IMG/VR virus record: IMGVR_UViG_3300034158_000023
Location: 62,001-126,000 of that record
Direction: 5' to 3' (one strand)
DNA: 64,000 nt
Made by a program: the position numbers and the translations under genes. This document shows, in pieces, positions 1 through 26,672 of this stretch. How positions within the stretch are numbered: position 1 is the stretch's first letter; every line of letters begins with the position of its first letter. Below the pieces are notes generated by a model that was not told the origin of the DNA, searched no databases, and was given only the letters and a program-made list of their open reading frames with translations.

Positions 1-218
1 GGTTAGCAGGCCTCGAATTTATACCCATCGCGTTTGGTGGTACTAGAGCCGAAGCTTTAACTAAGTTAGAACTTAAATGTGCAAACTTTACCTATGACAC
101 ATATTCACAATTCCATTTCATTTTACAGAATTGGGATGTCTTCACTCGCAAAGTTCTACACAGAACACCTAGTGAAATCAGTGACTACCTAATCCAGTTC
201 CGTCAAGAATTCATGTAA
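1..218 (+). CDS. 3' end of a hypothetical protein (starts before window)
   Basis: Open frame from position 3 (LAGLEFIPIAF...RQEFM) to TAA at 216-218. Confidence 0.65.
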   Translation, partial: LAGLEFIPIAFGGTRAEALTKLELKCANFTYDTYSQFHFILQNWDVFTRKVLHRTPSEISDYLIQFRQEFM

Positions 219-233
219 AAATAAGGAGGACTT

Positions 234-770
234 ATGTCCCAATCGCTACAAGTAAAACTTAATGCTCTTTGTGCAATCCACGTGCACGTACAGCAGTTCC
301 GAACTCAGCGTGGTATTCAACACGCGATGCAAGTGCTAAAGACCATAAGCTCTAGTTCCCCTAACCCAGTGGAAATCCCCCCTACAGGATTAGCACCCAA
401 TGAGTTAGTGCTCTTAGCCTTGGTGGATGGCGGAAGTCTGGCATTTACTGTAGGTGGTATGCAAGCAATTGCTGATCATTGGTTTAACTTCGCGTCGCGT
501 CTGGAATCCCCAGATAACGAATACACCCTACTCTGTGCTACTTTACTGCGTATCTCTGCTGAGTTAGAAGAGCAAGCCCCAGATAAAGATGTGATGCAAG
601 TGTATCAAAAGTTGTCAGGTGATATGTTGCTAAGTGCACTGAACATGAGCGATTTATCTTTAGACTTCATTGATCAGTTATTAAATGCGTATCAACTGAC
701 CTACCCAGATGAAACATATCCTAAAGCTCTAGAGCATCTAGACATTTTAGTAACGGCTTTGCTAAAGTAA
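234..770 (+). CDS. hypothetical protein
   Basis: 178-aa ORF, SD AAGGAGG. Confidence 0.8.
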   Translation: MSQSLQVKLNALCAIHVHVQQFRTQRGIQHAMQVLKTISSSSPNPVEIPPTGLAPNELVLLALVDGGSLAFTVGGMQAIADHWFNFASRLESPDNEYTLLCATLLRISAELEEQAPDKDVMQVYQKLSGDMLLSALNMSDLSLDFIDQLLNAYQLTYPDETYPKALEHLDILVTALLK

Positions 771-842
771 CCGCGCTACAATTATACAACATTGCAAAAG
801 TTTTATTAACTATCCCGCACGTAAAATAAAAGGAAGATTACC

Positions 843-1763
843 ATGATCGACATTATTAAGAACCGTACGTTAGATGCAAACTTTAAGAAACTGAAGTTGA
901 TCACTAACGAAGAGTTAAAAGATTATCGCGTACAACTTAACGGTCCCTCTACATATATTCCGCATGTAGTAAATAAGAACACTGGTGAACCTGTCAGTGA
1001 CACGCATGTGGTTTTGTTAGATACTGTAACTAATGAACTCCGTGTGTTTGAGTGGACATCACCACCACCTGTTAACCCTGGCGTTGCACCAATGTACTAT
1101 GGCGTCGCGCCAATACTAATGGATTATTCTGGGCGTTATGTAGTTCCCCCAGTGGCAATGCATCCATCGTATATGCCTAATGGTCACAACTCGCCGCGCT
1201 ACACGCAAGACGTTATGCCAGATGATACGTATATAACCATGTTTCAACCACATGGTCCAGATACCATCGAACCGATGTTATCCATCGAAGGGCAGGTATT
1301 AAAAGACCAAACCAAGCTGAACACAGTCACGTTCAAACGCGTAACTTTACAAAACCAAATGGATGGCAAAGGGGTAACTTGGCGCTTACTTAACAACTAT
1401 TTATGTATTGTGCAAGAGTCTAGTGTGTGGTATCACTCCAATGCGGGGATGGCTCCATTAACTATTGATCAAGCAATTGAAATCGGTTTAAATCCGATTA
1501 TCGGTTTGTGTGATGCAAATGGGCTGCATGGGTTGGAAAGTAAATGGATAGCTCATGTTCCAACGTATAACCCCCTGATAGCATCGGAGAACGTGGTGAT
1601 TCCCTGTGATGGTAGCGGTGCCAACCAGTATCACTATCCTCAACCAGCACATGCGTTTCAAGAGGTTTTCCCGCAACATTTTCCGCACCCTAATCAAGTA
1701 GTGTTTGGAGAAGGTCAACCAGCAAGACCTATGCCTAAAGGGTACAGACGCGGTAATTACTAA
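843..1763 (+). CDS. hypothetical protein, Pro-rich
   Basis: 306-aa ORF, AAAATAAAAGGAA leader, followed by terminator. Confidence 0.85.
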   Translation: MIDIIKNRTLDANFKKLKLITNEELKDYRVQLNGPSTYIPHVVNKNTGEPVSDTHVVLLDTVTNELRVFEWTSPPPVNPGVAPMYYGVAPILMDYSGRYVVPPVAMHPSYMPNGHNSPRYTQDVMPDDTYITMFQPHGPDTIEPMLSIEGQVLKDQTKLNTVTFKRVTLQNQMDGKGVTWRLLNNYLCIVQESSVWYHSNAGMAPLTIDQAIEIGLNPIIGLCDANGLHGLESKWIAHVPTYNPLIASENVVIPCDGSGANQYHYPQPAHAFQEVFPQHFPHPNQVVFGEGQPARPMPKGYRRGNY

Positions 1764-1769
1764 GATGTT

Positions 1770-1807
1770 AAAATAAGGGGTGGGGAGTTACTCCCCCCTT
1801 ATTTTTT
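1770..1807 (+). terminator. intrinsic terminator
   Basis: AAATAAGGGG-TGGGGAG..CTCCCCCCTTATTTT hairpin plus T tract. Confidence 0.8.
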
Positions 1808-1831
1808 GTATATTCAATTCATATGCAGGTA

Positions 1832-1839
1832 TATATTAC
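1832..1839 (+). promoter_or_regulatory. phiKZ-type early promoter motif TATATTAC
   Basis: Exact TATATTAC after a terminator and before a gene; recurs at 7374 and 23451, with variants at 12981, 18114, 20447, 50648, 56646. Confidence 0.7.
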
Positions 1840-1877
1840 CCTTGTAGTGAAACCTAATAATAAAAGGATTGTAGTAG

Positions 1878-2615: not shown

Positions 2616-2680
2616 AAAATATCTACACTACTTATGTAATGAGTAGCTGCTTACGATTACAACCACTCAAGTATAACCTC

Positions 2681-2713: not shown

Positions 2714-2736
2714 TGGTACAATAAAAGGAAACCGCA

Positions 2737-3501
2737 ATGCAATTACAAAATTTGTTATTTGGCCATTTTGAATACTCGGTATATAACGATCACTTTACCC
2801 CCATTATAGAAGCTAAGCTTAGAAAAATGGAAATGAATGGGTATGTGGTGTTACGTACTACTGTACCTGATTCACATCACGTGATTCGCGTTATGGGTAA
2901 AGAAGGAGTAGACGCAGACTTACTGATCGATTTGTTTTATCCAACCAATATGATACACCACATCCGGTTCGGCGTGTATGTTTTAGGAGGTGCGTTATGT
3001 TGTTGGGGAGGGTATAAACTAATGCAACTTGACAGTTTAGGTAATTGTAGTACTCCTAAGGAATTGAGTGAGTATTTACACAGAACTTTTGATGAGCATA
3101 GCAAATCCGATATAGTGCCACCTCCGTATGTATCGTTGGTCATCAGTGAACTGCGAACTATGACTAATCGTTTCTTGACTACCTTACCTAAAAAGGCAAT
3201 CCCTAGACGTGTCCATTTAGCGGCGTTCTTACGTGAGTTCACCACATGGCACAGATCACTTAATTCAGGATGGGCTTCGCAATACGCTGTTAAGTCAATC
3301 ATAGGCGAAGAACTTAAGCGTGTCTGGTCAAATCCAGCTGTTAAAAGCTTACGCACCGATTTCATTACCGATGTGTACTTCGACAGTAGGATGAATATTG
3401 AATGGCGTTATTTACAAAACTTGCACATTAACTATCTGACTACTCTAGTACGGAGGATAGAAGGTGTGTGGGATCCAGTAGCACAATGTCAGGGGATTTA
3501 G
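2737..3501 (+). CDS. hypothetical protein
   Basis: 254-aa ORF, AATAAAAGGAA leader. Confidence 0.85.
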   Translation: MQLQNLLFGHFEYSVYNDHFTPIIEAKLRKMEMNGYVVLRTTVPDSHHVIRVMGKEGVDADLLIDLFYPTNMIHHIRFGVYVLGGALCCWGGYKLMQLDSLGNCSTPKELSEYLHRTFDEHSKSDIVPPPYVSLVISELRTMTNRFLTTLPKKAIPRRVHLAAFLREFTTWHRSLNSGWASQYAVKSIIGEELKRVWSNPAVKSLRTDFITDVYFDSRMNIEWRYLQNLHINYLTTLVRRIEGVWDPVAQCQGI

Positions 3502-3503
3502 CT

Positions 3504-4142: not shown

Positions 4143-4160
4143 TAATAAAAGGAATACGGT

Positions 4161-6080
4161 ATGACTACCACAGTACATAAATATTTATTTGCTCCCATTA
4201 ATGCTGCATACACATACAACGACGGTACGTGGATGTTACCTATGGCACTAGCTGTAAAGCTGGTTGCTGATACAGCCAGCGTGAAAAAACCTATTGCGGT
4301 TAGATGTAAAATGCAATGGGTTCTAGATGGCATTCCAGTTGAAAACATAGTAGGTGAAGTTCAATTCGTTATAGAGGACAACTATCTGTATGGCTTAGTT
4401 ACCTTTATGTCGCACTTTGAACACTCTGCTGAAATGCCCCTCCTGCATATGTGCGGCACAAAGAAAAGCTCTGCATTCTACGGTGAGTTGGGTGGTGCCT
4501 GGGAAGATATTGCATTCCTAGAAGCGTTTGGTGATCAAAAGCACGCTACACCTCGGTTTGAATTAGTTTCTCCAGTTGCTGACGCATCTATCGACCTAAC
4601 TGATAGTGAACGTCGTATTTATTGGAGTGATAAAGTAAGCATATACAACCCCCTACAGGAAAAAGGTACTATGCAACAGTATAAAGATTTAGTAGCTAAC
4701 GTTTACAAAAATGGTCGCGTTAAGAGCGACCGTACTGGGACTGGTACTTTAAGTGTATTCGGTGCACAGATGCGTTTTGATTTAACTAAAGGTTTCCCTT
4801 TAAACACTTTAAAGTCAACTCCTTTATATCTGATTGCCAATGAACTGATTTGGTTTTTAAGCGGTTCTACTGATGATCGTGATCTAGCACGAATGGATCG
4901 CATTCACCGTGAAGCTGTTAAAACTTCTAAGGAGCGTGCTAAAGCTGACGAGGTTGGTCAACTTACATTACTACAATATTTCTTCGGTTGTATGCCGAGA
5001 GATGCCTCCGTTGAAACACAGCAACAAACCCTGGCTTGTTTCTATGTGCTCCATCCTCAGTATAACAAACCCCACGTGGAATTAACTTTACGTGTAATCG
5101 GTGCAGTGATTCGCTACCTAGTTAGTTGTGACCTATACGTTTGGTTGTATGAGTTAGCCGACAAGCCTACGATTTGGGATGAGTGGGCTACTTATAACAC
5201 CAACTACTGTCGTGAGCAATTATGTTGGGTAGTTAACCGCGCCGAAAATGCCCCTGATGTACAAGACGAGGTCGATGCTATATTAACCAAGTTTAAAAAT
5301 TGGGAAGGTACGGTTGCTGATAAAAATAAGTGGTTCTATAATGCTGTAGTCGGCATTTCAGATAAATACGCATTTGATGTAGGGGACCTCGTGCATAGAA
5401 GGTCGATTGGACCTATGTACGGGAAACAATGGCGGTCGTTTAGTGATTATGAAGTAGACCAGATCACTAACGCTATTAAGACTTTACGTAGCAATCCTAC
5501 TAGCCGCCGTATCTGTATTTCTGCTTGGGATCCTACGTTGCTACCTATGGACGGTTTTACCCCACATGAAAACGTGGATCGTGGTGATATGGCATTAGCG
5601 CCGTGCCATGCGTTCTTCCAGTTTAACGCAGAAGAGTTAACACGGGAAGAGTTGATGTCTATGGAAAAGGTGCAGTTAGAAACAGCTTACTGTGCCCCTG
5701 AAGCATTGGGTTCTTTTATTGCGGATAAACAACTGCAAGGTAAAATCCCTAAGTATCGTTTAAGTTGCCAAGTTTATTGTCGTAGTCAAGATTTGTTCTT
5801 GGGTACTCCTTTCAACATCGCTTCTTATGCTTTACTGACTCACATGGTAGCCGCTGAAGTAGGTATGGATGTTGGTGATCTTGTATGGACTGGTGGTGAC
5901 GTACACCTGTACTCTAACCACTTAGAACAAGTGCAAGAAATGTTAAGTCGTGACTGTGTAGCATTACCTACTCTGATTTTACATAAAGGGGATAGCGGGT
6001 ACATGGAACTACAATCGACCGACATGGAGTTGATAGGTTACAATCCACATCCTGCAATCTCTGCACCAGTAGCAATCTAA
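4161..6080 (+). CDS. thyA: thymidylate synthase with N-terminal fused domain and large insertions
   Basis: DRTGTGT, ELIWFLSG, GPMYGKQWR, SRR, MALAPCH (catalytic Cys), RSQDLFLGTPFNIASY, HLYSNH motifs; ThyA domain begins at ATG 4671. Confidence 0.95.
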   Translation: MTTTVHKYLFAPINAAYTYNDGTWMLPMALAVKLVADTASVKKPIAVRCKMQWVLDGIPVENIVGEVQFVIEDNYLYGLVTFMSHFEHSAEMPLLHMCGTKKSSAFYGELGGAWEDIAFLEAFGDQKHATPRFELVSPVADASIDLTDSERRIYWSDKVSIYNPLQEKGTMQQYKDLVANVYKNGRVKSDRTGTGTLSVFGAQMRFDLTKGFPLNTLKSTPLYLIANELIWFLSGSTDDRDLARMDRIHREAVKTSKERAKADEVGQLTLLQYFFGCMPRDASVETQQQTLACFYVLHPQYNKPHVELTLRVIGAVIRYLVSCDLYVWLYELADKPTIWDEWATYNTNYCREQLCWVVNRAENAPDVQDEVDAILTKFKNWEGTVADKNKWFYNAVVGISDKYAFDVGDLVHRRSIGPMYGKQWRSFSDYEVDQITNAIKTLRSNPTSRRICISAWDPTLLPMDGFTPHENVDRGDMALAPCHAFFQFNAEELTREELMSMEKVQLETAYCAPEALGSFIADKQLQGKIPKYRLSCQVYCRSQDLFLGTPFNIASYALLTHMVAAEVGMDVGDLVWTGGDVHLYSNHLEQVQEMLSRDCVALPTLILHKGDSGYMELQSTDMELIGYNPHPAISAPVAI

Positions 6081-6089
6081 ACGGCAAAC

Positions 6090-6118
6090 TAGGTAGAGGC
6101 TTCGGCCTCTACCTATGA
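6090..6118. terminator. terminator hairpin (TTCG loop)
   Basis: TAGGTAGAGGC-TTCG-GCCTCTACCTA then TGACC. Confidence 0.75.
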
Positions 6119-6143
6119 CCACTTAAAATAAAAGGAATAACGA

Positions 6144-7319
6144 ATGACCACGATTTGTTGGGATGGTAAATACTTAGCCTCTGATAGTCACGCTACGTCG
6201 GTAATTACTAATGAAATTAACGAAGCTATCAAAATACATTGCCCTAAGTTTGTTTACATTGGAGAAGATAAAATCTTGGCAGTGGCTTTTGCTGGACGTA
6301 TAGCGGCGATGCGAAAGTTTGCTGAGTTACTTACATCAGCTAATGCCAAAGTACAATTGCAAGATATCATGGACTTATGTGGGGTTATCAGATCAGGGGA
6401 AAAGTTCTCGGCTATTATCTTGACTGAAGGTGATGATTATATCCTAGAATACAGACATCACCGAGTTAAGGGATTCTCCGCAACCTTTAGTAGAATGGTT
6501 GTAACCAAGATCAAAAACAAATTACCTATGGTGATTGGTTCAGGTACTCGCACCCTAGGTAAATATTCTGGCTTGGGATTAACTGCGCCAGCAATGGTTC
6601 TTGTAGCGATTGGACTAGATGGTTTCAGCACAGGAGGAACCGTTAGTTATTTAACTAAAGATGATCTAGATTACAAGAATCGATCACACTTAACCGAAGA
6701 GGAGTACGCAAAAGTTGAGAAACTTTTGCGTACTTTGTTAGTAGGTACTAAACCTCATAAACAGGAACCACGATTAATTATCGAACCTGTGTACGAAGAA
6801 CGTCTAATCGATATAGTGGAAGAGGCTGGGAAGTTTTTTGAGAGAATGCAAGAAGCGACTAAACCAACCGTACTCAAAACGATTATCTCGTGGGGTAATT
6901 TCAACCTTGGGGAGCAGATAGATGGTAACGCAGAACTCGCAAAGTGGCTTAGTGCAAGTCCAGTCTTAGTGAAGCGGATATCTGAAGGACAGCTATATGG
7001 GGAGTGGATTAGTCCAGGTAGTCAGTCGCTCATAGAAATAGAGGAAGGTAAACGTTCCAAATACAACAATGATGAAACAACCGCTGGAATCTACTTCTTA
7101 GACCCTGACAAAATTTGCCTTAGGGTAGTGGAGTTTAGTTGGGTGGTTACCCAACAACCAGATGTGCAAGTTCTGAATATTATTGCTCACCTAACACCGT
7201 ATGGTCCGCATGCTGATAAGTTGACAGAACTAACTGTCGCTAAATGTAGGATGCGAGCATTTCCTAGAGTTGAACGCAACCAGGAACTTACTTACGTTAC
7301 TGTAGATTTAATATGTTAA
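6144..7319 (+). CDS. Ntn-hydrolase (HslV/proteasome-beta-like) domain fused to a degenerate prohead-protease-like domain
   Basis: N-terminal TTICWDGKYLASDS, K, AG, GSG, TGG pattern; C-terminal RISEGQLYGEW..P, LTPYGPHADKL. Confidence 0.65.
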   Translation: MTTICWDGKYLASDSHATSVITNEINEAIKIHCPKFVYIGEDKILAVAFAGRIAAMRKFAELLTSANAKVQLQDIMDLCGVIRSGEKFSAIILTEGDDYILEYRHHRVKGFSATFSRMVVTKIKNKLPMVIGSGTRTLGKYSGLGLTAPAMVLVAIGLDGFSTGGTVSYLTKDDLDYKNRSHLTEEEYAKVEKLLRTLLVGTKPHKQEPRLIIEPVYEERLIDIVEEAGKFFERMQEATKPTVLKTIISWGNFNLGEQIDGNAELAKWLSASPVLVKRISEGQLYGEWISPGSQSLIEIEEGKRSKYNNDETTAGIYFLDPDKICLRVVEFSWVVTQQPDVQVLNIIAHLTPYGPHADKLTELTVAKCRMRAFPRVERNQELTYVTVDLIC

Positions 7320-7323
7320 AACT

Positions 7324-7350
7324 AAGAAGCCTTCGGGCTTCTTTTTTTGT
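7324..7350 (+). terminator. intrinsic terminator
   Basis: AAGAAGCC-TTCG-GGCTTCTT plus T tract. Confidence 0.85.
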
Positions 7351-7373
7351 CCGTTCCCAGCACATTTTAAGTA

Positions 7374-7381
7374 TATATTAC
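7374..7381 (+). promoter_or_regulatory. early promoter motif TATATTAC
   Basis: Exact motif between terminator and gene. Confidence 0.7.
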
Positions 7382-7419
7382 CTTAGTGTTAACCACATTA
7401 ATAATAAAAGGAATACCCA

Positions 7420-7953
7420 ATGTCACCACGTAAATTACAGCATTACCTACCAGGGTTTAAATTAGTTAATTTAATCCAAGGAGTAGCTCCTTACTTTGTA
7501 GTACCTGTAGGAGGCAAGCCTCCAGAAACTATAGAGGAGATGACTAAGTGGCCTATCCACTATCAGTTCACTGTTAAAACCGTATACGCTGCTTACCCAG
7601 AAGTCCCACGTGTTAAAATGGATAAAGCTGTTTATCGAGGGTTGTCCGATTTAGAACTAATTGCTACCTTAAAACAAATGGGCATTCCACTACCTAAGAA
7701 GTTTGCGCAGATATGTGATTGGGATCGTACGTATTTAACTGAACGAGTAAACTACATAGAGTGCGCGTTCACCATTACCCACCGTATGTGTGCAGAGCGC
7801 TTTAGCTTCCAGTTCAGACATACGCTAGCTAGTTACCATAACGCTATGGTAAGTGCATTGAAGGTAAGAACTGTGCTTTCGTATACCTTCCACACTAAAG
7901 GAAAGTTAGACAACTTTGTGTTGGCAGACGATTTGCATACTAAGATCTGGTAA
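7420..7953 (+). CDS. hypothetical protein
   Basis: 177-aa ORF, AATAAAAGGAA leader. Confidence 0.85.
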   Translation: MSPRKLQHYLPGFKLVNLIQGVAPYFVVPVGGKPPETIEEMTKWPIHYQFTVKTVYAAYPEVPRVKMDKAVYRGLSDLELIATLKQMGIPLPKKFAQICDWDRTYLTERVNYIECAFTITHRMCAERFSFQFRHTLASYHNAMVSALKVRTVLSYTFHTKGKLDNFVLADDLHTKIW

Positions 7954-12977: not shown

Positions 12978-13050
12978 CTATATATCACCATAGTGGATAA
13001 ACCCATAAGGGCTAACCGTTTTTACCATTATTATAAAAGGAGTTGTGACA

Positions 13051-13572
13051 ATGTTTAACACGTATAACCATATAGGAACAGTAACCAATATGTTCTTATC
13101 GGAAGCTATTAAAACAGCTCCAGTTAAAGGCATTGATGCTGACCCATTGGTACGTGAGTTATGTGAATGGATTTGTTATGAAACTAAAGGAGTTACAGTA
13201 TTTTCGTGTGAGGGACATGACCGACCTTACTCGGAAGGATATGTCATGATATCTTGGCCAACGATGTTGTCGTGTCCCCTTGTAGTAAGTACATTACAAG
13301 CAGCAATCGATACGCACTTAACCCCGTTGAAAAAGAAGAAACAACTATCTGCTTTCGTGGCTATGGCAGTAGACAATCGTATAGGTACGTCATCGGATTT
13401 CACATTCCGCTTTAAATACAAACACAATGACCGCACCTTTTCTATGCGTGCCATTTGTCGTGTATTGAAACAAGTGATGCAGGATATCGACGCGTTAGAT
13501 AACCCCGTGACTCCGGTAGAGTTAGATGAAGAAGTTGATGTCAATGTGTCTATGTATGACCTAGGTGCATAA
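13051..13572 (+). CDS. hypothetical protein with SCEGH motif
   Basis: ATG 13051 best spaced from AAAAGGAG; TVFSCEGH motif; early-type promoter at 12981. Confidence 0.8.
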   Translation: MFNTYNHIGTVTNMFLSEAIKTAPVKGIDADPLVRELCEWICYETKGVTVFSCEGHDRPYSEGYVMISWPTMLSCPLVVSTLQAAIDTHLTPLKKKKQLSAFVAMAVDNRIGTSSDFTFRFKYKHNDRTFSMRAICRVLKQVMQDIDALDNPVTPVELDEEVDVNVSMYDLGA

Positions 13573-13642
13573 AAGTTAAAAAATATTTCAACCATTAATT
13601 AAATGTAAGACCATCGTTCAATTATAAAAGGGAAAGTTTACT

Positions 13643-13945
13643 ATGTCTAAGAAATTCACTGTATTAAAAATCGCTGGTGTTAAAGGCGGTATGTTGTCTG
13701 TTGATTTAATTGCTCATGAGAAAGTCGGCGTTGAGATCAACGTACTGCTTGCTCCAGATGATGCAATCAAAGAAGGTCTGATCATCACTGGTGATTTAGC
13801 AGAAGGTAAAAAATACTCTGTCAAGTTGAAAGACGGCGAAGCTACCGTTACTGCGATCAAAGGTTATACTGCTGGTAAAGTAGTTAACGCTACAGGCGGC
13901 AATGGTTGCTCACAAAGCAAAGTTACCATGATGGATAACATGTAA
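13643..13945 (+). CDS. small beta-rich protein with C-terminal GxGC tail (cassette 1, gene 1)
   Basis: 100-aa ORF, ATAAAAGGGA leader, own terminator. Confidence 0.85.
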   Translation: MSKKFTVLKIAGVKGGMLSVDLIAHEKVGVEINVLLAPDDAIKEGLIITGDLAEGKKYSVKLKDGEATVTAIKGYTAGKVVNATGGNGCSQSKVTMMDNM

Positions 13946-13985: not shown

Positions 13986-14014
13986 GCGCGTATAATAAAA
14001 TAAAAGGATGACGT

Positions 14015-14551
14015 ATGTCTGTAGTCATATTAGAGAACGGTAAGGTAATGTCTGATAACATAACCTACGTTACTGGCAGACGAACCACTGGCACTAAACA
14101 GTGGAAGAACGACCGACTAGTGATTGCAATGGTTGGTATGATACCAGGTAGAATCCTGGCTAAGAAAATGGTTGACTTCGCAGATGAGTTACTCACTAAG
14201 TATTACAGTGGTGAAGAAGTAAACTTTTTAGACCTGGCTTCAATGATGCCACTCCCTGCTCCTGATATAAAGCGCCACAATCTCCTCATCGTGTTAGGTA
14301 CTCACACTGACGTTTGGGTGATTGAGGTAATTAACGAAAAGGGTAAAATGATACCAACTGTATCAGAGTTAGAAATAGAAGCATTCTTTGCTGATGGTGC
14401 TGGATGCATACATGCTAATTTCATGCATCTCAACGGTATAGATATTGAAAAAGAGTTCCACCGTGCTACAGTCTATGAAATAGAAGTAGGTGGTATTACC
14501 CATGTTACTGATCTACGTGGTTTAGTGCCATTTGAGGGGGCGATATGTTAA
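14015..14551 (+). CDS. Ntn-hydrolase-fold protein with N-terminal Ser (cassette 1, gene 2)
   Basis: SVVILENGKVMSD..K..G..DGAG..VGG parallels 6144 and 15819 products. Confidence 0.6.
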   Translation: MSVVILENGKVMSDNITYVTGRRTTGTKQWKNDRLVIAMVGMIPGRILAKKMVDFADELLTKYYSGEEVNFLDLASMMPLPAPDIKRHNLLIVLGTHTDVWVIEVINEKGKMIPTVSELEIEAFFADGAGCIHANFMHLNGIDIEKEFHRATVYEIEVGGITHVTDLRGLVPFEGAIC

Positions 14552-15186: not shown

Positions 15187-15228
15187 AACAAACCATCCAA
15201 ACCACCATTAAATAAAAGGGACACTACA

Positions 15229-15750
15229 ATGTCTAAAACTACCATTAGCGCAACAATCGTTACAATCCTTGGTTTTTCATCAGGTGCTTTAACGGCACAA
15301 CTTAATGTCCCTGTCGAAGGTAGCGACGACAGGAAATATGTGGAACTTCAAATTAAGGCTGAACAAGAGTTCTCAGTACCTTTAGATGTAGTAATCGAAG
15401 AACACTTACTTAACAGTGAAGAAGTCTTAATACTGTCAGTCAATGAGTTCGGTACTTACCTATTAGAAACTGAAGCAGACATCGAAGCCCAATTTAAAGC
15501 CGATGATATCGCCATCCGAGAAGCAATGGCTTCATCTGGTGAAGCTGGTGCTCCGGCAACTGAGTCTACTGAAAAACCAGGTCTCTTGGGTAAAGCTGCT
15601 GCTGCCGTAGCAAGTGTCGCTACCGCTGTGGGCATTGGTACTAAAACAGCTGAAGCTAAAACTGAATCCCGCTCTGCGGCTGCTTCTACTGCAACTCCAC
15701 GCCGTGGTCAAGGCTGCGCTTATGCAGAAAAAGCTAAGATCAATTTCTAA
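15229..15750 (+). CDS. protein with Ala-rich linker and C-terminal GxGC tail (cassette 2, gene 1)
   Basis: 173-aa ORF, AAATAAAAGGGA leader, own terminator. Confidence 0.85.
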   Translation: MSKTTISATIVTILGFSSGALTAQLNVPVEGSDDRKYVELQIKAEQEFSVPLDVVIEEHLLNSEEVLILSVNEFGTYLLETEADIEAQFKADDIAIREAMASSGEAGAPATESTEKPGLLGKAAAAVASVATAVGIGTKTAEAKTESRSAAASTATPRRGQGCAYAEKAKINF

Positions 15751-15760: not shown

Positions 15761-15790
15761 GTGGGAGAGCTACGGCTCTCCCACTATGCC
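15761..15790 (+). terminator. terminator hairpin followed by TATGCC
   Basis: GTGGGAGAGC-TACG-GCTCTCCCAC. Confidence 0.75.
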
Positions 15791-15818
15791 ATTTACCTAA
15801 AATAAAAGGAATACTGTT

Positions 15819-16373
15819 ATGTCAGTCATTGCACTGCATCAAGGGGTTCTCCATGCTGACTCGTTAGCTCTGGTTGATTGCCACCCACATCAGATACAAA
15901 AGTTATACCAGACCAAACGTGTAGCGTTAGCGCACGTTGGGGAACTGTTAACTAAAGCAGAAGCGGATAAAATTTTAGCATTGTTCACTGATCAGATCCA
16001 ATACACTGGTACTATTGATGCTAAAGCACTGATGGAGACTTTAAATCGTAATCATTACATACACACAGATTTTATCTTGGTTACCCGAGATAAAGCCTTC
16101 CGAGTTAGTTTACACCATCCTGGACCACAGCCATCTGCATTTAATGTGGAAGGTGTACCTATTGGTATGGCTACTAACAATTTAGACGTACACTGTATCG
16201 AACTCTCTCCTATGGCTACCTACATGAATGGCAGCTGTGTGAGTTATTTAAAGGTGGCACTAGAGTTAGGGTATCCAGTAGTGGAAGCAGTTGCTAAAAT
16301 GAAACCATTTACCAGTTTAAATGGTCCTATTACTCATAGCGTGAAGTTATCAGAACTGGAGGCTATAGCATGA
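15819..16373 (+). CDS. Ntn-hydrolase-fold protein with N-terminal Ser (cassette 2, gene 2)
   Basis: SVIALHQGVLHADS..K..G..NGS..ALELG pattern. Confidence 0.6.
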   Translation: MSVIALHQGVLHADSLALVDCHPHQIQKLYQTKRVALAHVGELLTKAEADKILALFTDQIQYTGTIDAKALMETLNRNHYIHTDFILVTRDKAFRVSLHHPGPQPSAFNVEGVPIGMATNNLDVHCIELSPMATYMNGSCVSYLKVALELGYPVVEAVAKMKPFTSLNGPITHSVKLSELEAIA

Positions 16374-17035: not shown

Positions 17036-17080
17036 CCAGTAATGAAGTGTGGATCTAATAATAAAAGGAAGTTGTGGGAA

Positions 17081-17188
17081 ATGGAAGAAGAGTCGGCTAA
17101 AACGGAATTTGCGTGTTACGTCCACATGAGTGTGGCGTGCACAATCATTTTAGCATCGTGGTTTTTAATACTCACGGTAGCATTTTAA
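17081..17188 (+). CDS. 35-aa single-TM microprotein (not in ORF track)
   Basis: AATAAAAGGAA leader; MEEESAKTEFACYVHMSVACTIILASWFLILTVAF; fills the gap up to the next leader. Confidence 0.6.
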   Translation: MEEESAKTEFACYVHMSVACTIILASWFLILTVAF

Positions 17189-17206
17189 GAATAAAAGGAG
17201 TTCGGT

Positions 17207-17833
17207 ATGGAAAATTTTAACGAGATGCATAAACTGTTTGCTAAGGTAGCTACAGACTTTCTGCGTTTTTATGGACTAGTAGCTAAAGATGCCGTTGCTA
17301 AGAACTGGGATCCTGAGTTAAGTCTGTTACAAAACATCGACAAAGAAATTAACTCGCATGACTGTGGTTTAGCTGCTTTAGCTATGGCAATTAAATTATA
17401 CCACAGTTCCCCTAAGATAGGACATGAATTCCTAGATATCGGCAACAACGAAAATCATTGGTATATCAGTTGGTGGAATGGTATTGCCGCTGACAATACT
17501 CTATATTGGGATACGTCGGTAGCATTGTTGCCACCTACAGAGAATGCGACCTCCTTACGTGGATATCGAGAAGGGTGTGTGTTAGATGAAGACGACATTG
17601 AAGACGCGACTTACGCCATCTTAAATAACGATGGTTATGGTCAGGCTATTCTATACCAATGGCTGCACTTAAGTTGCCCAGACGTGGAATATGAAACCAC
17701 TGGTGATGACACTACAGATCTAATCAATTTGATACGTGCTATCTTTGATAATCCATTTATGTTCGCTGGTGCGTTTCCTAACTCTGAAAATAACGATTGT
17801 ATCTATAGTAACCGGGATAAGGTAAGAGCGTAA
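17207..17833 (+). CDS. hypothetical protein (HDCG and HWY motifs, possibly papain-like fold)
   Basis: 208-aa ORF, AATAAAAGGAG leader. Confidence 0.8.
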   Translation: MENFNEMHKLFAKVATDFLRFYGLVAKDAVAKNWDPELSLLQNIDKEINSHDCGLAALAMAIKLYHSSPKIGHEFLDIGNNENHWYISWWNGIAADNTLYWDTSVALLPPTENATSLRGYREGCVLDEDDIEDATYAILNNDGYGQAILYQWLHLSCPDVEYETTGDDTTDLINLIRAIFDNPFMFAGAFPNSENNDCIYSNRDKVRA

Positions 17834-18057: not shown

Positions 18058-18158
18058 CTAAGCAGAAAGACCCCTTCTCAGGGTCTTTCTTTTTTTGCAA
18101 ACAAGGCTAAGCATATATTATCAAAGTAGTATAACACTCACAATAAAAGGTAAACCAC

Positions 18159-20395
<2,237 letters not shown>

Positions 20396-20422: not shown

Positions 20423-20499
20423 GCTGTCTCCAAAAGGATGTAAATATATATCATCTTGGTGAACAATACCTGTTCTATAAATTATAAAAGGAATACCAC

Positions 20500-21489
20500 A
20501 TGTTCGGAATATGCCCAGATAAATTAGCACTAGTTGCTCGCTTGAAATCTTTAGATGTAACTATGTTCAGTAAGCACGAATGTACCACTATCAAATCTGC
20601 CATTACCTTTATTGCAGTTGAGTGTGTGATTCGCCCTCGTTCTGAATTGGCTCCTAGACTTCGTCAGATGCTGCCACTGAGCGACAAAGCTTTAGTTAAA
20701 GCCTTAGCTGGCTTTAACCTCAAAGTCTCCGCTATGGATCGTTTACGCGTTATGCGTGAACATGTAAAACACATGGATGGTTATTATCTTCCTAGCACTA
20801 AAGTGCTAAACGAGATGTATAACGATCTTAACATCCCAGATTACCCATTTGAGGATATCAACCAGATCCCTACAGAAAAGCAACGTGCTATTCTGATTAC
20901 CTCAGGGATTGCTGAGCAAGACATCAATTACGATCCTGCTAACGTAATGGGACCTGATGATTTGCATCCATCTATCAACATCGCTTTAGATGTGATTGAC
21001 AACATCTATTTCGAAAGTAACCCAGAAGACCAGCGCTTACGTAGTGCGTTAAAGAAAGCTAAACACCGCGTGTTGGTGTCTGGCATTCTAAACCCTAACA
21101 AAGCTATCCCAGGCTATTTCTTCCGTAACTTACGTGTTAAGAAAATGACTGAGATGATCAAAGCTGCTGAAGGATATGCTAACCATGCTAATGGCCATGA
21201 TGTTGCTAAAGTAATGGCAATCCATGTGGCTATGGCTGTTGGTTATACTACCCCAACTGCTCGCACTCACTCCACCGCTGCTCTGCAAACCTTGCAGTAC
21301 GATGTTAAGGATTTCGTAGATAACGTTTATCCTCTAACATCGCTATCTAAAATTCCTACTCAGGAACAATTAGATTGGCAAGCCAAGTACGGCTATGCTC
21401 AGAAGATCCAAACCCGCACTCCTAAAGTTTCTACTGGAGTAGAAGACAAGCTTGACAACAACGTACGTAAATTTGTACGTAAAGTGTAA
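20500..21489 (+). CDS. hypothetical early protein with internal repeat
   Basis: 329-aa ORF, promoter variant and ATAAAAGGAA leader. Confidence 0.85.
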   Translation: MFGICPDKLALVARLKSLDVTMFSKHECTTIKSAITFIAVECVIRPRSELAPRLRQMLPLSDKALVKALAGFNLKVSAMDRLRVMREHVKHMDGYYLPSTKVLNEMYNDLNIPDYPFEDINQIPTEKQRAILITSGIAEQDINYDPANVMGPDDLHPSINIALDVIDNIYFESNPEDQRLRSALKKAKHRVLVSGILNPNKAIPGYFFRNLRVKKMTEMIKAAEGYANHANGHDVAKVMAIHVAMAVGYTTPTARTHSTAALQTLQYDVKDFVDNVYPLTSLSKIPTQEQLDWQAKYGYAQKIQTRTPKVSTGVEDKLDNNVRKFVRKV

Positions 21490-21507
21490 TTACTTAAATA
21501 AAAGGAA

Positions 21508-21882
21508 ATGTCTATGCTAGCTACACCTATACTGATTATGGTTACTGTAATCAACCGAGCTGGTTGCCCAGCTTATCACAACGAATTTGGTTTTGGTATC
21601 GATTACACTGATAAAGAACTAGCCACTGCCTCTATCAGCTCAGTAATAAAAACTACTGAAACTTTACCTGTTCGTAACTTAACCTCTGTGCCTAAAGACT
21701 ATGTCGCAGATTTTAAACAGAAGTTTGAAGCATACGACTTTGAAAAAGCTATTGCCGAAGGTTGGGATAGTATTATTGAAAGTCCAGGGGAACATGTTGT
21801 AAAAGTCCAGATTGGTAATCTAGACATTATTCTAGAATACAATTATTCCCCTGTAGATGATTCCAACAAAGCGCTTCATTAA
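21508..21882 (+). CDS. hypothetical protein
   Basis: 124-aa ORF; start may be 21514. Confidence 0.8.
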   Translation: MSMLATPILIMVTVINRAGCPAYHNEFGFGIDYTDKELATASISSVIKTTETLPVRNLTSVPKDYVADFKQKFEAYDFEKAIAEGWDSIIESPGEHVVKVQIGNLDIILEYNYSPVDDSNKALH

Positions 21883-21928: not shown

Positions 21929-22040
21929 ACATCTTTACCTCTTGTAGCTCTGGCTCTAGGCGCTAGCCCATTTGCCGTAATATATAAAGAGAGATGTTTA
22001 CACTAGTATAATAGGGAGGGGATAAACCCTCCCGTTATGC
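21929..22040 (+). ncRNA. candidate small structured RNA
   Basis: No credible ORF between the putative promoter and the GGGAGGG/CCCTCCC terminator; ACATCT..CTCTT pairs with AAGAGAGATGT. Confidence 0.4.
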
Positions 22041-22073
22041 TGTCTTACTATTAAAATAAAAGGATTAAAGTAG

Positions 22074-23012
22074 ATGGAAAACACAAAAGACATATTGATG
22101 CATTCAATATTAAACCACCTGCCTACTGGTGTACCACTACTGGTATTAAGTGGAGGATTCGATAGTTCACTGATAGCACAGTTACTAGTGGAATCTAACC
22201 ATGTGTTCGATGTGGTGTACGTAGACTACGAGTCTACTGGTGCAAATAAACGAATTCGAGAAAAGAAAGCATACGAAACTATTTTAGCTAAGTATGAACA
22301 CAACATCAGGAATCACATCGTTCAGCCTATTGATGGGGTTTCAGCAAGAGCGGACATTAGGCTAAGGTATCAGCAACCATGGGCACACGCAACAGCTGCT
22401 GCTATAAATACTAAGCTAGATACTAGTTGTGTGTTAACTGGGATCCTCTTAACGGATGAGAACAAGTTCGATGACACTTTTAAGTTAGCGTACCTAGGAG
22501 CGTTACAAACCTTTCATCCGCAATACTGGTCTATGGACAATCATCCGAAGTGTTTATCTCCGCTTCGAAATGTAGAGAAAGCTAATGTCTTAGAAATGGT
22601 AAACCCCGACTTGGCTCAACACTTAACTTTTTGTGAGTCGTTTGGCGTAGATGACAATTGCGGGAAATGTAATTCCTGTAAAGCTTTCTACAGTACGCTT
22701 ATGAGAAAAACGATGCATACTCCCACTAAGGTAGTGTTGCTGCGTCAAGCTAACCGTATGGATGGGTTAATGCGTTATCTATACGCACTTAAACAGCTTG
22801 GGGATAACCTACTAATCGAACTAGGTATAAACCCTAACTGTAAAGCGTGGAAAGATATTGCCGATGAACATCTTAGTCGTCAGTTACCAGAAAAACCTCC
22901 TGAGGTTCACCCTGGGGATATAGGTCTACCAGCCGTAACTGACGTAATATTGGATAGAGCTCCGAAGGACTCTGCACTAGGAGAAGAATCATGCACGCCA
23001 CAATCCGTTTAG
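22074..23012 (+). CDS. QueC-like PP-loop ATPase (7-cyano-7-deazaguanine synthase family)
   Basis: LSGGFDS PP-loop and C-x8-CGKCNSC Zn cluster. Confidence 0.75.
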   Translation: MENTKDILMHSILNHLPTGVPLLVLSGGFDSSLIAQLLVESNHVFDVVYVDYESTGANKRIREKKAYETILAKYEHNIRNHIVQPIDGVSARADIRLRYQQPWAHATAAAINTKLDTSCVLTGILLTDENKFDDTFKLAYLGALQTFHPQYWSMDNHPKCLSPLRNVEKANVLEMVNPDLAQHLTFCESFGVDDNCGKCNSCKAFYSTLMRKTMHTPTKVVLLRQANRMDGLMRYLYALKQLGDNLLIELGINPNCKAWKDIADEHLSRQLPEKPPEVHPGDIGLPAVTDVILDRAPKDSALGEESCTPQSV

Positions 23013-23431: not shown

Positions 23432-23450
23432 CTCCAATGAAACGTAGTTA

Positions 23451-23458
23451 TATATTAC
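23451..23458 (+). promoter_or_regulatory. early promoter motif TATATTAC
   Basis: Exact motif in intergenic gap. Confidence 0.7.
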
Positions 23459-23620: not shown

Positions 23621-24065
23621 ATATTTAAATGTATGCCAGGAAGTAGAAACTCTTTTAAAGGGAGTTAGATCAACTCCTAGAGTACCTGGCACCGTAAGTG
23701 TAAAGAAGATATCTACTGATATGCTTTACGCTGCACTAGACAGCTGCGATGCATTAGGCAACGGTGATCTGTATCATCGGGTAATGCAAACGCACAATGT
23801 ATTAGGATTTGAAAACCTAATAGTATACCACGGTATTATCTTAGGTAAAGAAGCTGACCTATCTCAGCTGCATGCGCCTAATGACCCTACGTCAATTCCG
23901 GTAAGGGGTATGATGATACCTAAAGGGTATGTTGTATACGCATTCATTCTGATCAAAGCTTTATTGCAACGATTAGAGTTAGTGAGTAATCGACAAACGT
24001 CAATCGTAGTTAAGATATTTCTGGGTAACACTTTATCCTACTTATCTTACTGCATAACTCAATAA
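23535..24065 (+). CDS. hypothetical protein (start uncertain, possibly 23604)
   Basis: 176-aa ORF. Confidence 0.7.
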   Translation: MRCLHLTYLELRIMQPLLATQTPMNHSGKYLNVCQEVETLLKGVRSTPRVPGTVSVKKISTDMLYAALDSCDALGNGDLYHRVMQTHNVLGFENLIVYHGIILGKEADLSQLHAPNDPTSIPVRGMMIPKGYVVYAFILIKALLQRLELVSNRQTSIVVKIFLGNTLSYLSYCITQ

Positions 24066-24144
24066 ACTGTAAAAAAATACTCACTCTCCTTATTACTTGA
24101 GTGAGTATTACTTTTGATACTCAAAATAAAAGGGAAACCGCAAC

Positions 24145-24618
24145 ATGTCTAAAGAATTAAGTCAAGAAGTAAAACTAGCCGCAGGTATTTTAGCAGAAGG
24201 TGTTACTGTTAATGCTGAAACTGGTGACGTTACATTCGCCAAAGAAGCCGTAGAAAAAGCTATCGAAGGTTTGTGTCTGACTGAAGCCTTAACTGTGTAT
24301 CAAAAGTCAATGCCTCTGCTGGTAGCTGCTGCTAAAGTCGCCACAGCTGAAAGTGCTAAGCCTGCGATGCAGTCTAATCCTGAATTGGCTGTAGCTGTTT
24401 CAAACATCAAAATGGGTACAGACACACTGAACACCAAGCTATATCGTTCACGTGAAAACTTTAACCCAGGCACTGGCACCAAAACAACTGCTCATTGGGG
24501 CACATCGTCATCCATTACCACAGTGGTGACTAAACCTAATGGTCAAAACAAACTCGCCGCAGCACACATCGCTGCAATGTATTCTGACATGGCTGCTGAC
24601 GTAACCATCGAAGCATAA
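24145..24618 (+). CDS. hypothetical protein
   Basis: 157-aa ORF, AAAATAAAAGGGA leader, own terminator at 24641-24671. Confidence 0.85.
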   Translation: MSKELSQEVKLAAGILAEGVTVNAETGDVTFAKEAVEKAIEGLCLTEALTVYQKSMPLLVAAAKVATAESAKPAMQSNPELAVAVSNIKMGTDTLNTKLYRSRENFNPGTGTKTTAHWGTSSSITTVVTKPNGQNKLAAAHIAAMYSDMAADVTIEA

Positions 24619-24682
24619 GTACAGGCGGTAATGTAAACTGAATAAAGGGGCTTCGGCTCCTTTATTTTTTTGGACTATCCCT

Positions 24683-25066
24683 ATGCGTTTATACACTTTA
24701 CAGATGGCAAAATGGCGTAAAGCTAAAGAGCTAGGCATTCCAGTTTTAGATACCACCGTTAAATCTGGAGAACTTACGTTTGCACCTAGTTGGCAAATAG
24801 TCAGAGCAGTTAAAGACGGCATATCGCTTAGTGGTATCCATGTATCACCAGAACAAGACTACATAGATCGGTATAAAGTACTGATGAATGAGAGTTGGCG
24901 TAACAACCAAGCCAGATGGTTAGAGGTTGCTGCGATGCCTGATGTGGCGCTTATGTGTTACTGTAAGGCAGGGGATTTCTGTCACCGTGTATTGCTTATT
25001 AAGTATTTTGAATCCCTGTGTGCCAAGTACGGAATCCCGTTCGAATACATGGGAGAGATACAATAA
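24683..25066 (+). CDS. DUF488-like protein
   Basis: FAPSW and LMCYC...FCHR motifs. Confidence 0.65.
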   Translation: MRLYTLQMAKWRKAKELGIPVLDTTVKSGELTFAPSWQIVRAVKDGISLSGIHVSPEQDYIDRYKVLMNESWRNNQARWLEVAAMPDVALMCYCKAGDFCHRVLLIKYFESLCAKYGIPFEYMGEIQ

Positions 25067-25098
25067 TATGTTAAACTACAACTATACGGGAAATAACC

Positions 25099-25656
25099 AT
25101 GACAAGTGATGAACTAAACTCCAGAATGGAATCACTGATTTCCGCCCTGCACGCTATAGAAAGTTCTAATATTGCAATCCCTTTGCGTCCTGAAGTGGAT
25201 TACGATGATGTAATTTTGATCGTAGCAGATAGCGATAATCGTCAATTACAAAGTTTAACGTTACTGAAAGAACGTTTCAGTAAATGTTATCGTGAGGATG
25301 TATCTATACCTGAAGTTATAGATTTCATTTCCTTGTTCGTGAATGCCTTGGATGTAGCGGCATTTTTAGGTAGTGAACTACTAGTCAATGGGGAACAACG
25401 ATTAGTGGCTTCTGCCGTGAAGAAATTGAAAGCTGCTGGGTTTACCATTGAGTCTCTTAACTGTATATTAGGGGAAGGTAAATCATACGTTGCTATCAGG
25501 ACGTCTAAAGGTTTAATCGTGGTACATTTAAACCATGAACACAACCACTCATACACCTCAGCGTTAGCGTGGAACGATGAACTCAACCAAGAGCGCATCC
25601 AACAACGAACTACGTGTGTAGGTTTCTGGGGTAAACTCCTGAACATGTTTAAATGA
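25099..25656 (+). CDS. hypothetical protein
   Basis: 185-aa ORF. Confidence 0.8.
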   Translation: MTSDELNSRMESLISALHAIESSNIAIPLRPEVDYDDVILIVADSDNRQLQSLTLLKERFSKCYREDVSIPEVIDFISLFVNALDVAAFLGSELLVNGEQRLVASAVKKLKAAGFTIESLNCILGEGKSYVAIRTSKGLIVVHLNHEHNHSYTSALAWNDELNQERIQQRTTCVGFWGKLLNMFK

Positions 25657-25765
25657 TACCTGTCATATCTGTAGGAGGTAGCCCTCCTACATATGCCGTC
25701 TCCAATCATTTGTAAATATATATAGTCATTGTGTTATAGAAACATAAAACAAAAGGAAATATGTA

Positions 25766-26395
25766 ATGAACGAAGCTATTCTTAAATTCGCCGCAACCTT
25801 TAAAGTAGCGGCTACCTCAGTAGATGAAGACGTAGCAGAGGATCGTGCAGCAGCCACGTTCCTAGGGTATGTGTTAGGTGACCCTGGTGCTATCGTAGCT
25901 AAACCGCCAGAGTATACTCCTCTGCAAACTATCCTGCGTGGGCTAAGATCTGCGTTGTTAATGCGTGTTGCACCGTTCTGCTTACACAAAATCGGTGATG
26001 GTCTATATGCTCATGCAACCGATACCAATGATGTACGTTTTTCTGAACTACACCGTTGTTGGGCTGATATGCGACAAGCCCTGTGGTTAAGCGCTCCTAA
26101 TGCCCCAGTGAAAATGTTAGATGCTGTGGCAGTAGAAGATGCGTTCCATCTGCTCTTCGATCTAATCTTTAATGATTATTTCATTGAAGAAGTCGATGAA
26201 GATGTATTGAAAGCGTTCCACAAGTATGCTGATGTAGCTAAAGAAATGGCCTATGACAACATGGGCGATATCGGGTTACAAGGCGATGCAGCAGAAGAGT
26301 TTGTAGAACAGCGTACTCGCGCTTTCAACACTCTGATGTTTATCTGTGAAAAAGAAGCAACCGCAGAACCAGTAAAAATGATGGACGCTAAGTAG
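25766..26395 (+). CDS. hypothetical protein
   Basis: 209-aa ORF, AAAACAAAAGGAA leader. Confidence 0.85.
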   Translation: MNEAILKFAATFKVAATSVDEDVAEDRAAATFLGYVLGDPGAIVAKPPEYTPLQTILRGLRSALLMRVAPFCLHKIGDGLYAHATDTNDVRFSELHRCWADMRQALWLSAPNAPVKMLDAVAVEDAFHLLFDLIFNDYFIEEVDEDVLKAFHKYADVAKEMAYDNMGDIGLQGDAAEEFVEQRTRAFNTLMFICEKEATAEPVKMMDAK

Positions 26396-26458
26396 TTAAA
26401 CTGTAGGGTCTAGGTATTAGACCCTATAACTGTGATTATTATTGAAAAGGAATTTATC

Positions 26459-26656
26459 ATGATTAACGTAACTGATTTTATCCGTCATCGTTTTAACCTG
26501 AGTGACTTCACTCAAATCCGTTTAGTAGAAGACAACATCATTGTACATGGTGTACGTATTGGTCGTATACATAACGCCCAAGATACTACATTGATAACAT
26601 TATCAGGTAGTGCCGAAGTAGTAGACTTAAACAAGTTCAGCAATTTATCCTATTAG
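26459..26656 (+). CDS. small hypothetical protein
   Basis: ATG 26459 after AAAAGGAA. Confidence 0.7.
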   Translation: MINVTDFIRHRFNLSDFTQIRLVEDNIIVHGVRIGRIHNAQDTTLITLSGSAEVVDLNKFSNLSY

Positions 26657-26672
26657 AATAAAAGGAAACTCC

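Follow-up and report, generated by a model that had tools for sequence, protein, structure and literature searches.

A shared A-rich leader before non-structural genes of an uncultivated phiKZ-like jumbo phage, a likely class-specific translation-initiation signal

The window analysed here is a stretch of 64,000 nucleotides, bases 62001-126000 of the IMG/VR virus record IMGVR_UViG_3300034158_000023, which consists of one contig of 215,386 bp bearing direct terminal repeats. Its subject is a short A-rich leader motif that stands directly before the start codons of many genes. The window encodes a phiKZ-type tail sheath (PF20961), a tail tube and phiKZ-family virion proteins, as well as the tubulin PhuZ (55027-55998) and a divergent DNA polymerase. 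The genes for chimallin and for a homologue of the beta subunit of the non-virion RNA polymerase (nvRNAP) are located just outside the window. The best matches of the sheath protein among deposited phages are at most 35% identical. The phiKZ-type virion genes, PhuZ, chimallin and nvRNAP, taken together with this low identity, mark the source as an uncultivated, nucleus-forming phiKZ-like jumbo phage. Near-identical DNA was found in metagenomes from peat, biofilm, freshwater, sediment and groundwater.

A simple model combining coding potential with Shine-Dalgarno (SD) signals called 208 genes, and the upstream regions of 194 of these were anchored on the GG of the SD site. Genetic code table 11 was used for all translations. 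Contigs of relatives (Logan, NCBI) were reached through homologues of the sheath and PhuZ; single-protein scans of IMG/VR for relatives gave no match. One ENA contig, L001, is 98-100% identical to the window, which is too close for any inference on selection.

The pattern WATAAAAGGR has 22 matches in the window, whereas dinucleotide shuffles yield 0.83 on average and never more than 3. All but one of these matches (21/22) are on the + strand, and the genome as a whole (215 kb) has 42 on the + and 1 on the - strand. The core, AATAAAAGGA, is present in 29 copies, with 0.25-0.32 expected from order-2 and order-3 Markov models. Among the 194 anchored genes, AATAAA at positions -7 to -2 relative to the SD GG is matched at six of six positions in 33 genes and at five of six in 16. 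The distribution is bimodal, and the leader genes form a discrete class with no gradient. Since only 2.8 perfect AATAAA would be expected from independent columns, the motif is not reducible to A-rich composition plus AGGA, and conservation does extend past AGGA, as an earlier note on this sequence had claimed. The positions listed in that note agreed with ours within 2 nt in 20 of 21 cases, the remaining one (18142) being the variant AATAAAAGGT. Two WATAAAAGGR matches were missing from its list, one at 30114 (+) and one at 56460-56469 (-). The former (30114-30123, AATAAAAGGG) is antisense within the tail sheath gene, has no open reading frame (ORF) behind it and is probably a chance match.

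In full, the motif reads T-A-N-(A/T)ATAAAAGGA-a-t-a-c, and the start codon mostly follows about 7-8 nt past GGA. The class logo is longer than the earlier note saw: it has T at -3 and A at -2 (88%), is nearly free of G from -6 to -1, and in its 3' part shows (A/T)ATAAAAGGA followed by a preference for A-T-A-C. In the class, the base 3' of GGA is A (25 genes), T (15) or G (9), while elsewhere it is mostly G. Of 58 relaxed sites ([AT]ATAAA[AG]GG), 50 have a start codon 4-12 nt past GG and an ORF of at least 30 codons, which is the spacing of an SD site before a real ORF (~5-10 nt). The most frequent distance from GG to the start is 8-9 nt (30/50 sites), and the start codons are ATG in 45 cases and GTG in 5. 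The carriers number about 50 of ~208 genes, or about a quarter, and all of them are on the + strand (49/169 anchored + genes versus 0/25 - genes; p = 8e-4).

The leader is distributed unevenly along the window. It precedes 17-20 of 35 genes in the region 217-27300, but just one of the 16 genes of the structural block (27300-49400; p = 0.004). Tight gene packing alone does not account for this absence, because when the comparison is limited to genes preceded by 15 nt or more of intergenic DNA, the leader is present in 16/27 cases, versus 0/6 for those of the structural block (p = 0.018). Across the genome, plain AGGAG is also the SD site of structural-type genes that have a hairpin upstream and 37-105 nt of room. 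The absence of the leader from most structural genes, proposed in the earlier note, is thus upheld; the A-rich variants it reported at 33986 and 41793 are present, and the rest of 27304-49304 uses plain AGGAG-type SD sites. No virion gene is among the carriers, which include the genes for chimallin, the nvRNAP beta homologue, thymidylate synthase and a QueC-like PP-loop protein. Of the remaining carriers, the majority matched no Pfam family, and the lack of a Pfam family is usual for early jumbo-phage genes.

Two kinds of element are located upstream of the leaders. The AT-rich element gTATATATTACC occurs in ~23 intergenic copies genome-wide, essentially on the + strand only, and is conserved in the relatives L002, L007, L008 and L009. 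Early promoters of jumbo phages, which are used by the virion RNA polymerase (RNAP), have been described as conserved AT-rich stretches, ~10 nt long and with their centre near -10 (PMC7598289). gTATATATTACC fits this description and is a predicted promoter: it is AT-rich, ~10 nt long, upstream of presumed early operons and in one orientation. The leader is present in 17/20 genes behind this element versus 32/174 others (odds ratio 25, p = 4e-9); the promoter-like copy at 23449 is one of the few that have no leader motif behind them. The other element is a GC-rich hairpin followed by TATGCYGT, found at the 3' ends of genes on both strands and often palindromic (ACGGCATA, hairpin, TATGCCGT). These hairpin-TATG elements look like the terminators of the phage. 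They contain TATG, the core of the phiKZ late promoter (T-3 A T G+1; PMC7598289, PMC12809450), and may be combined terminator and re-initiation sites. The leader is present in 9/10 genes behind them (p = 2e-5).

Measured from the early promoter element, the leader lies 16-50 nt further downstream; measured from TATG, the distance is 11-25 nt. The predicted 5' untranslated regions (5'UTRs) are therefore ~25-40 nt long, and the motif would fill most of them. The 5'UTRs of early phiKZ mRNAs are mostly 31-40 nt, and none of these mRNAs is leaderless (PMC8244752). The spacing between promoter and ATG in the present genome is consistent with such lengths. Assignment of the class to early expression is a prediction from promoter motifs and gene content. 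The label 'early/middle' used in the earlier note agrees with the position of the leader behind early promoters, but is less safe as a whole, because the leader also follows nearly all of the hairpin-TATG elements that resemble phiKZ late promoters. A safer label for these genes is non-structural and promoter-proximal or independently initiated. Motif sites and associated elements of the window are listed in Table 1.

Table 1. Leader motifs, predicted promoter and terminator elements, and the candidate small RNA in the window.
Feature	Position	Strand	Context
Leader motif	825-834	+	before gene 843-1763
Leader motif	1859-1868	+	before gene 1878-2615; early promoter-like TATATATTAC at 1830-1839
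Leader motif	2720-2729	+	before ORF 2737-3501; hairpin-TATGCTGG at 2709-2716
Leader motif	4144-4153	+	before thymidylate synthase gene 4161-6080; L002 orthologue has variant AATAAAGGAA
Leader motif	6127-6136	+	before gene 6144-7319; hairpin-TATGACCA at 6114-6121
Leader motif	7403-7412	+	before gene 7420-7953; early promoter-like site 7372-7381
Leader motif, T variant	13032-13041	+	before gene 13051-13572; early promoter-like site 12979-12988
Leader motif (TATAAAAGGG)	13623-13632	+	before gene 13643-13945
Leader motif	13999-14008	+	before gene 14015-14551
Leader motif, GGG variant	15211-15220	+	before gene 15229-15750
Leader motif	15801-15810	+	before gene 15819-16373; hairpin-TATGCCAT at 15785-15792
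Leader motif	17060-17069	+	before 35-codon ORF 17081-17188
Leader motif	17190-17199	+	before gene 17207-17833
Leader variant AATAAAAGGT	18142-18151	+	before gene 18159-18440; early promoter-like site 18112-18121
Leader motif, T variant	20483-20492	+	before gene 20500-21489; early promoter-like site 20445-20454
Leader motif	21497-21506	+	before gene 21514-21882
Leader motif	22055-22064	+	before QueC-like PP-loop gene 22074-23012; hairpin-TATGCTGT at 22036-22043
Leader motif, GGG variant	24125-24134	+	before gene 24145-24618; L002 and L007 orthologues keep variants
Near-variant AACAAAAGGA	25748-25757	+	before gene 25766-26395; hairpin-TATGCCGT at 25692-25699
Leader motif	26657-26666	+	before gene 26673-27251
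Leader motif, T variant	50696-50705	+	before gene 50713-51237; part of 65-nt cassette 50646-50705
Leader motif	56671-56680	+	before gene 56687-57031; early promoter-like site 56644-56653
Early promoter-like gTATATATTACC sites	1830-1839, 7372-7381, 12979-12988, 18112-18121, 20445-20454, 23449-23458, 50646-50655, 56644-56653		
Hairpin-TATG elements	2709, 6114, 15785, 22036, 25692, 49341		many more genome-wide, both strands
Candidate anti-leader small RNA, ~78 nt	56434-56511	+	terminator-ended, seed complementary to leader

For the genes at 24145, 50713 and 56687, and likewise for those of thymidylate synthase and chimallin, the orthologues in relatives retain the motif, although their proteins are only 32-66% identical to those of the phage. 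The L009 orthologue of gene 56687-57031 (32% protein identity) has TATAAAAGGAATAC. At the orthologues of structural genes in relatives, the motif is never present. The L002/L003 lineage often has AATAAAGGA, with one A fewer, and also the form with four A; as it mixes both forms, there is no lineage-wide switch to exploit. The claim of the earlier note that the motif is a class-specific signal in the position of a translation signal is thus corroborated by SD spacing, location within the predicted 5'UTR of ~30-35 nt, association with predicted early promoters and retention at orthologues. The 30 nt upstream of 51 sites share no more sequence than a coding control (mean identity 0.277 versus 0.279). 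Judged from these comparisons, the motif is shared through selection and not as a copied cassette, with the exception of one cassette in three copies. This 65-nt unit consists of an early promoter, a 5'UTR hairpin (AAGAAAGC..GCTTTCTT) and the leader, and precedes three unrelated ORFs of 174, 29 and 146 codons (window 50646-50705; genome 177462-177526 and 214455-214502). The cassette hairpin was also found in L005, L008 and L009.

A counterpart of the leader is present in phiKZ. The early genes gp6, gp10, gp10.1, gp14 and gp15 of this phage carry GTAAAAAGGAA at the same distance from ATG, and TAAAAAGGR occurs in the first 50 kb of phiKZ 7 times on the + and never on the - strand. We found no description of the GTAAAAAGGAA version as a motif in the literature, and saw no anti-motif RNA in the first 50 kb of phiKZ. 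The two phages belong to one group and have the same layout of an AT-rich early promoter followed by a short UTR, the promoter of phiKZ being TATATTAC-like (PMC8244752, PMC7598289). They differ in the leader sequence itself, which is GUAAAAAGGAA in phiKZ and AAUAAAAGGAA here.

Taken together, the motif is likely to be a class-specific translation-initiation leader of non-structural genes, most of them predicted to be early. It would form the 3' part of a short 5' untranslated leader common to a discrete gene class. AAGGA would act as an ordinary SD site at ordinary spacing, while the AAUAAAA directly 5' of it and the preferred A-U-A-C on its 3' side would keep the initiation region single-stranded. 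In addition, the A-rich tract and GGA, two signals recognised by ribosomal protein S1, would be brought within one footprint of 10-12 nt. The likely role of such a structure-free, S1-friendly platform with a moderate SD site is to load ribosomes strongly and autonomously onto transcripts of early and other non-structural genes, most of all at the first gene behind each early promoter. Near-identity of the leader would also allow a single trans-acting factor to address all genes of the class together. The presence of the motif in the mRNA, the involvement of S1 and the gain in translation are inferred here.

Folding predictions are consistent with this interpretation. Leaders with the motif have a predicted minimum free energy of -4.6 kcal/mol versus -7.0 kcal/mol for other genes (p about 1e-9), and the probability that the SD site is unpaired is 0.66 with the motif versus 0.53 for the others (p about 1e-9). 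Both the logo and the folding thus place an A/U-rich unstructured tract directly 5' of the SD site, as in S1 enhancers. Known A/U-rich, S1-binding enhancers upstream of SD sites include the T7 gene 10 leader, the rpsA leader and ribosome standby sites. The leader resembles them in its location directly 5' of the SD site, its A/U richness, its low predicted structure and its association with genes that need strong independent initiation. It differs in that the known enhancers are degenerate, whereas the leader is letter-identical in 29 copies and marks a bimodal class.

The closest documented analogue comes from phage T4, in which early initiation regions contain a RegB/S1 target of 11 single-stranded nucleotides, GGAG followed by AAUAAAA (PMC1702504). 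GGA and the A-rich tract were argued to be two S1-recognised signals within one S1 footprint, and the same elements were noted in translational enhancers (PMC1702504). The T4 site (consensus GGAGAAUAAAA) and the leader are both class-specific extended SD motifs with GGA and AAUAAAA within ~11 nt. By analogy with T4, in which AAUAAAA plus GGA form the S1-dependent part of the RegB site (PMC1702504), the leader may bind S1 and gain in translation. The leader can be grouped, as a variant, with the known A-rich or S1-type extended ribosome-binding sites, and has a parallel in T4 and a counterpart in phiKZ. Three mechanisms had been offered in the earlier note, namely an A-rich enhancer, a protein-binding site and a small RNA (sRNA) target. 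Its general interpretation as a class-specific initiation leader is retained here, while the mechanisms are supported only in part, the A-rich enhancer best of the three on account of the T4 elements and the less structured leaders.

Several observations weigh against this interpretation. The order of the two signals is reversed relative to T4, where the A-rich tract is 3' of GGA and not 5' as here; T4 also has G after GGA, where the leader has A or U. Accordingly, the leader does not have the arrangement of a RegB/S1 cleavage site (GGAG, rarely GGAU, then a 3' A-rich heptamer). The letter-exact identity of the 29 copies over 10 nt is not explained by an S1 or low-structure enhancer, because a general S1 enhancer should tolerate degenerate A/U-rich sequence. 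The motif is absent from relatives at 38-42% PhuZ identity and is thus clade-specific. None of the sequencing runs in which the phage DNA was found is recorded as RNA. Finally, AAGGA would pair with UCCUU of the canonical 16S tail, which need not be the tail of the host, and the AAUA part would pair with no canonical tail.

The only motif match on the - strand corresponds to TCCTTTTATT on the + strand (56460-56469) and is located within a 265-nt gap after gene 56008-56421. The surrounding sequence has the makings of a small RNA. From 5' to 3', it comprises TATG (56431-56434), a 5' hairpin, the seed UUCCUUUUAUU (56459-56469), a small hairpin, an intrinsic terminator (56488-56505) and a T-run. 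In the predicted fold, the seed is unpaired between the 5' hairpin and the small hairpin plus terminator. Genome-wide, CCTTTTAT occurs once on the + and 52 times on the - strand. The 10-mer complement has 1 copy on the + strand versus 0.25 expected genome-wide, and this copy is placed in intergenic DNA, which makes up ~5% of the genome. The sense strand has 1 anti-motif versus 3.8 expected, a shortfall that is not significant (23 of 168 word permutations are as rare). The mean duplex energy of the seed is -13.1 kcal/mol with motif leaders, versus -8.8 with other genes and -7.6 +/- 1.0 for shuffled seeds.

The element is also present in L008 (PhuZ 81% identical) and L009 (51%), and the comparison covers these two and the window; the contig of the L003 lineage ends before phuZ. 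Across the three sequences, UUCCUUUUA is invariant, TATG is retained, and compensatory changes are seen in both main hairpins (the 5' hairpin and the terminator). When 8 intergenic regions of the window were compared with L009, the one with the element proved the best conserved (0.64-0.66, versus 0.59-0.62 for the flanking genes). All three leaders found in L009 read TATAAAAGGA, and so does the complement of its seed, while in the window and L008 both read AATAAAAGGA. An unpaired complementary seed, a conserved predicted RNA structure and a terminator, as expected of a base-pairing sRNA, are thus all present, in three sequences only. Pattern scans of IMG/VR and JGI metagenomes gave no match to the candidate RNA. 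No Rfam family reached its gathering score anywhere in the window; the best match of the candidate was MicA, with 22 bits against a gathering threshold of 41, and the sub-threshold matches at this site are terminator-like hits to Hfq-type sRNAs. A micro-ORF on the - strand behind the inverted motif at 56469 was considered and rejected: only 0-2 nt separate GGA from its ATG, the encoded peptides are unconserved and have 13 codons in both the window and L008 and 11 in L009, two non-synonymous and one synonymous changes separate the window from L008, and the terminator is on the + strand only. The remainder of the gap (56513-56643) contains blocks that are invariant in the relative with 51% PhuZ identity, e.g. 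TTTTAAGCCAC and ATATATGAAAGA.

Multi-target or antisense RNAs of other systems include RsaE/RoxS, with their C-rich seeds, and the c4 antisense RNA of P1/P7. GcvB is a multi-target base-pairing sRNA that occludes ribosome-binding sites (PMC3879156). The candidate is similar to multi-target sRNAs in its size, its Rho-independent terminator and a single-stranded seed directed at the SD region of many mRNAs, but differs in being phage-encoded, aimed at the phage's own leader class and without an Rfam family. Tentatively, UUCCUUUUAUU of this ~78-nt RNA could pair with AAUAAAAGGAA of ~50 leaders and occlude the SD site, so that one phage-encoded RNA with an exact complement to the leader shared by non-structural mRNAs might shut off the class or tune it as a group. 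Shut-off could occur late in infection if the 5' TATG is a phiKZ-type late promoter. Such pairing is compatible with an initiation leader and would explain the letter-exact conservation; exact complementarity, the conserved structured element, the unpaired seed and the covariation of leader and seed in L009 speak for it. We nevertheless regard it as doubtful, since two of the only three sequences are close, a single position covaries, one chance complement in 215 kb is not in itself rare, the conserved leader A at -2 is unmatched by the seed, and the duplex is A/U-rich. The candidate is also missing from the metagenome scans and from Rfam. Gene 56008-56421 may simply end in this element, which would then be its 3'UTR and terminator; alternatively, the element could act in cis, with the leader at 56671 as its target. 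The sRNA-target idea of the earlier note has therefore gained an exact complement, its conservation and one covarying position, and its support is still thin. The same exact conservation, over 10-13 nt, would suit a sequence-specific reader of another type, and the motif might be an operator or cleavage site for a phage RNA-binding protein or nuclease, as with T4 RegA or RegB/S1. T4 early initiation regions do share GGAG plus AAUAAAA as the RegB/S1 target (PMC1702504), and most genes of the phage have no known function. This reading is unlikely, however: the genome has no match to RegA (PF01818) or CsrA (PF02599) and none to RegB (PF10715) at E <= 1, no candidate protein was identified in it, and T4 RegB cleaves GGAA poorly (PMC1702504), whereas the class prefers A or T after GGA.

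Exchange between genomes offers a further explanation, in which the motif is a portable junction kept by recombination of cassettes at shared leaders and not for any special translational property. T4 PeSL-type promoter-stem-loop repeats are a model for such exchange. The 65-nt cassette before three unrelated genes and the contigs from run X4 agree with it. In this run, one site (18130) continues into a different gene with its own TACAATAAAAGGAAC leader; at another, the contigs skip 493 nt (13048-13542), starting 7 nt past the leader at 13032-13041, and gene 13051-13572 is lost. Gene cassettes thus seem to be gained and lost at leaders. As an origin of the motif itself, exchange is improbable, because a common stretch of 10-18 nt is short for homologous recombination, no sequence outside the motif is shared at 48 of 51 sites, orthologues retain it over deep divergence, phiKZ has its own version, and absence from structural genes would not be explained. 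Lowest of all is the probability that the motif is a DNA-level promoter element, i.e. a middle promoter or a T4-late-like TATAAATA box that merely adjoins the starts. The motif is A/T-rich, its T variant TATAAAAGG resembles TATA-type boxes, and middle promoters of phiKZ-like phages are poorly defined (PMC7598289). Yet transcription would then start 0-8 nt from ATG or inside the gene, while early phiKZ mRNAs are not leaderless (PMC8244752), and in phiKZ the centre of the middle motif is at -24, while TATG, the late motif, coincides with the start site (PMC7598289). Moreover, GGA stands where other genes have their SD site, 17 copies are located 16-50 nt downstream of a strong predicted early promoter, and some are 6-18 nt past the stop codon of the preceding gene, within operons. 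The T variant as a TATA box or a T4-late-like -10 element was rejected because of its position.

In Chimalliviridae, the phiKZ group, transcription takes place inside a protein shell and mRNA is exported to host ribosomes. To our knowledge, it is largely unknown how the temporal classes of these phages are separated at the level of translation. An initiation leader of the kind proposed here would allow early or non-structural genes of uncultivated relatives to be recognised from sequence alone, and AAUAAAA plus GGA would be a testable element for recruitment of the ribosome or S1. The leader and the complementary RNA together are a concrete candidate for a post-transcriptional early-to-late switch; if the proposal is true, the anti-leader RNA would take, through base pairing, the part that RegA and RegB play in T4. 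Because a similar leader precedes the phiKZ genes named above, the idea is testable in a cultured system by comparing phiKZ genes with and without TAAAAAGGA.

Some minor observations concern individual carriers of the leader. At 17060-17199, two perfect leader copies 130 nt apart flank the 35-codon ORF 17081-17188, which may be a real small gene. Among the listed differences between reads and the window, none falls within these two motifs and some are located 4-16 nt away; with ~1 expected, this is uninformative. The thymidylate synthase encoded by gene 4161-6080 has 639 amino acids (aa), and matches to the thymidylate synthase domain begin from about residue 340. The L002 orthologue has 450 aa, so that the window copy carries a long N-terminal extension. 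Gene 6144-7319 is a mosaic when compared to L001: both flanks and the first half of the gene are 98-100% identical, while identity drops to 53-88% over its C-terminal half (window 6800-7330), forming a divergent patch within one gene.

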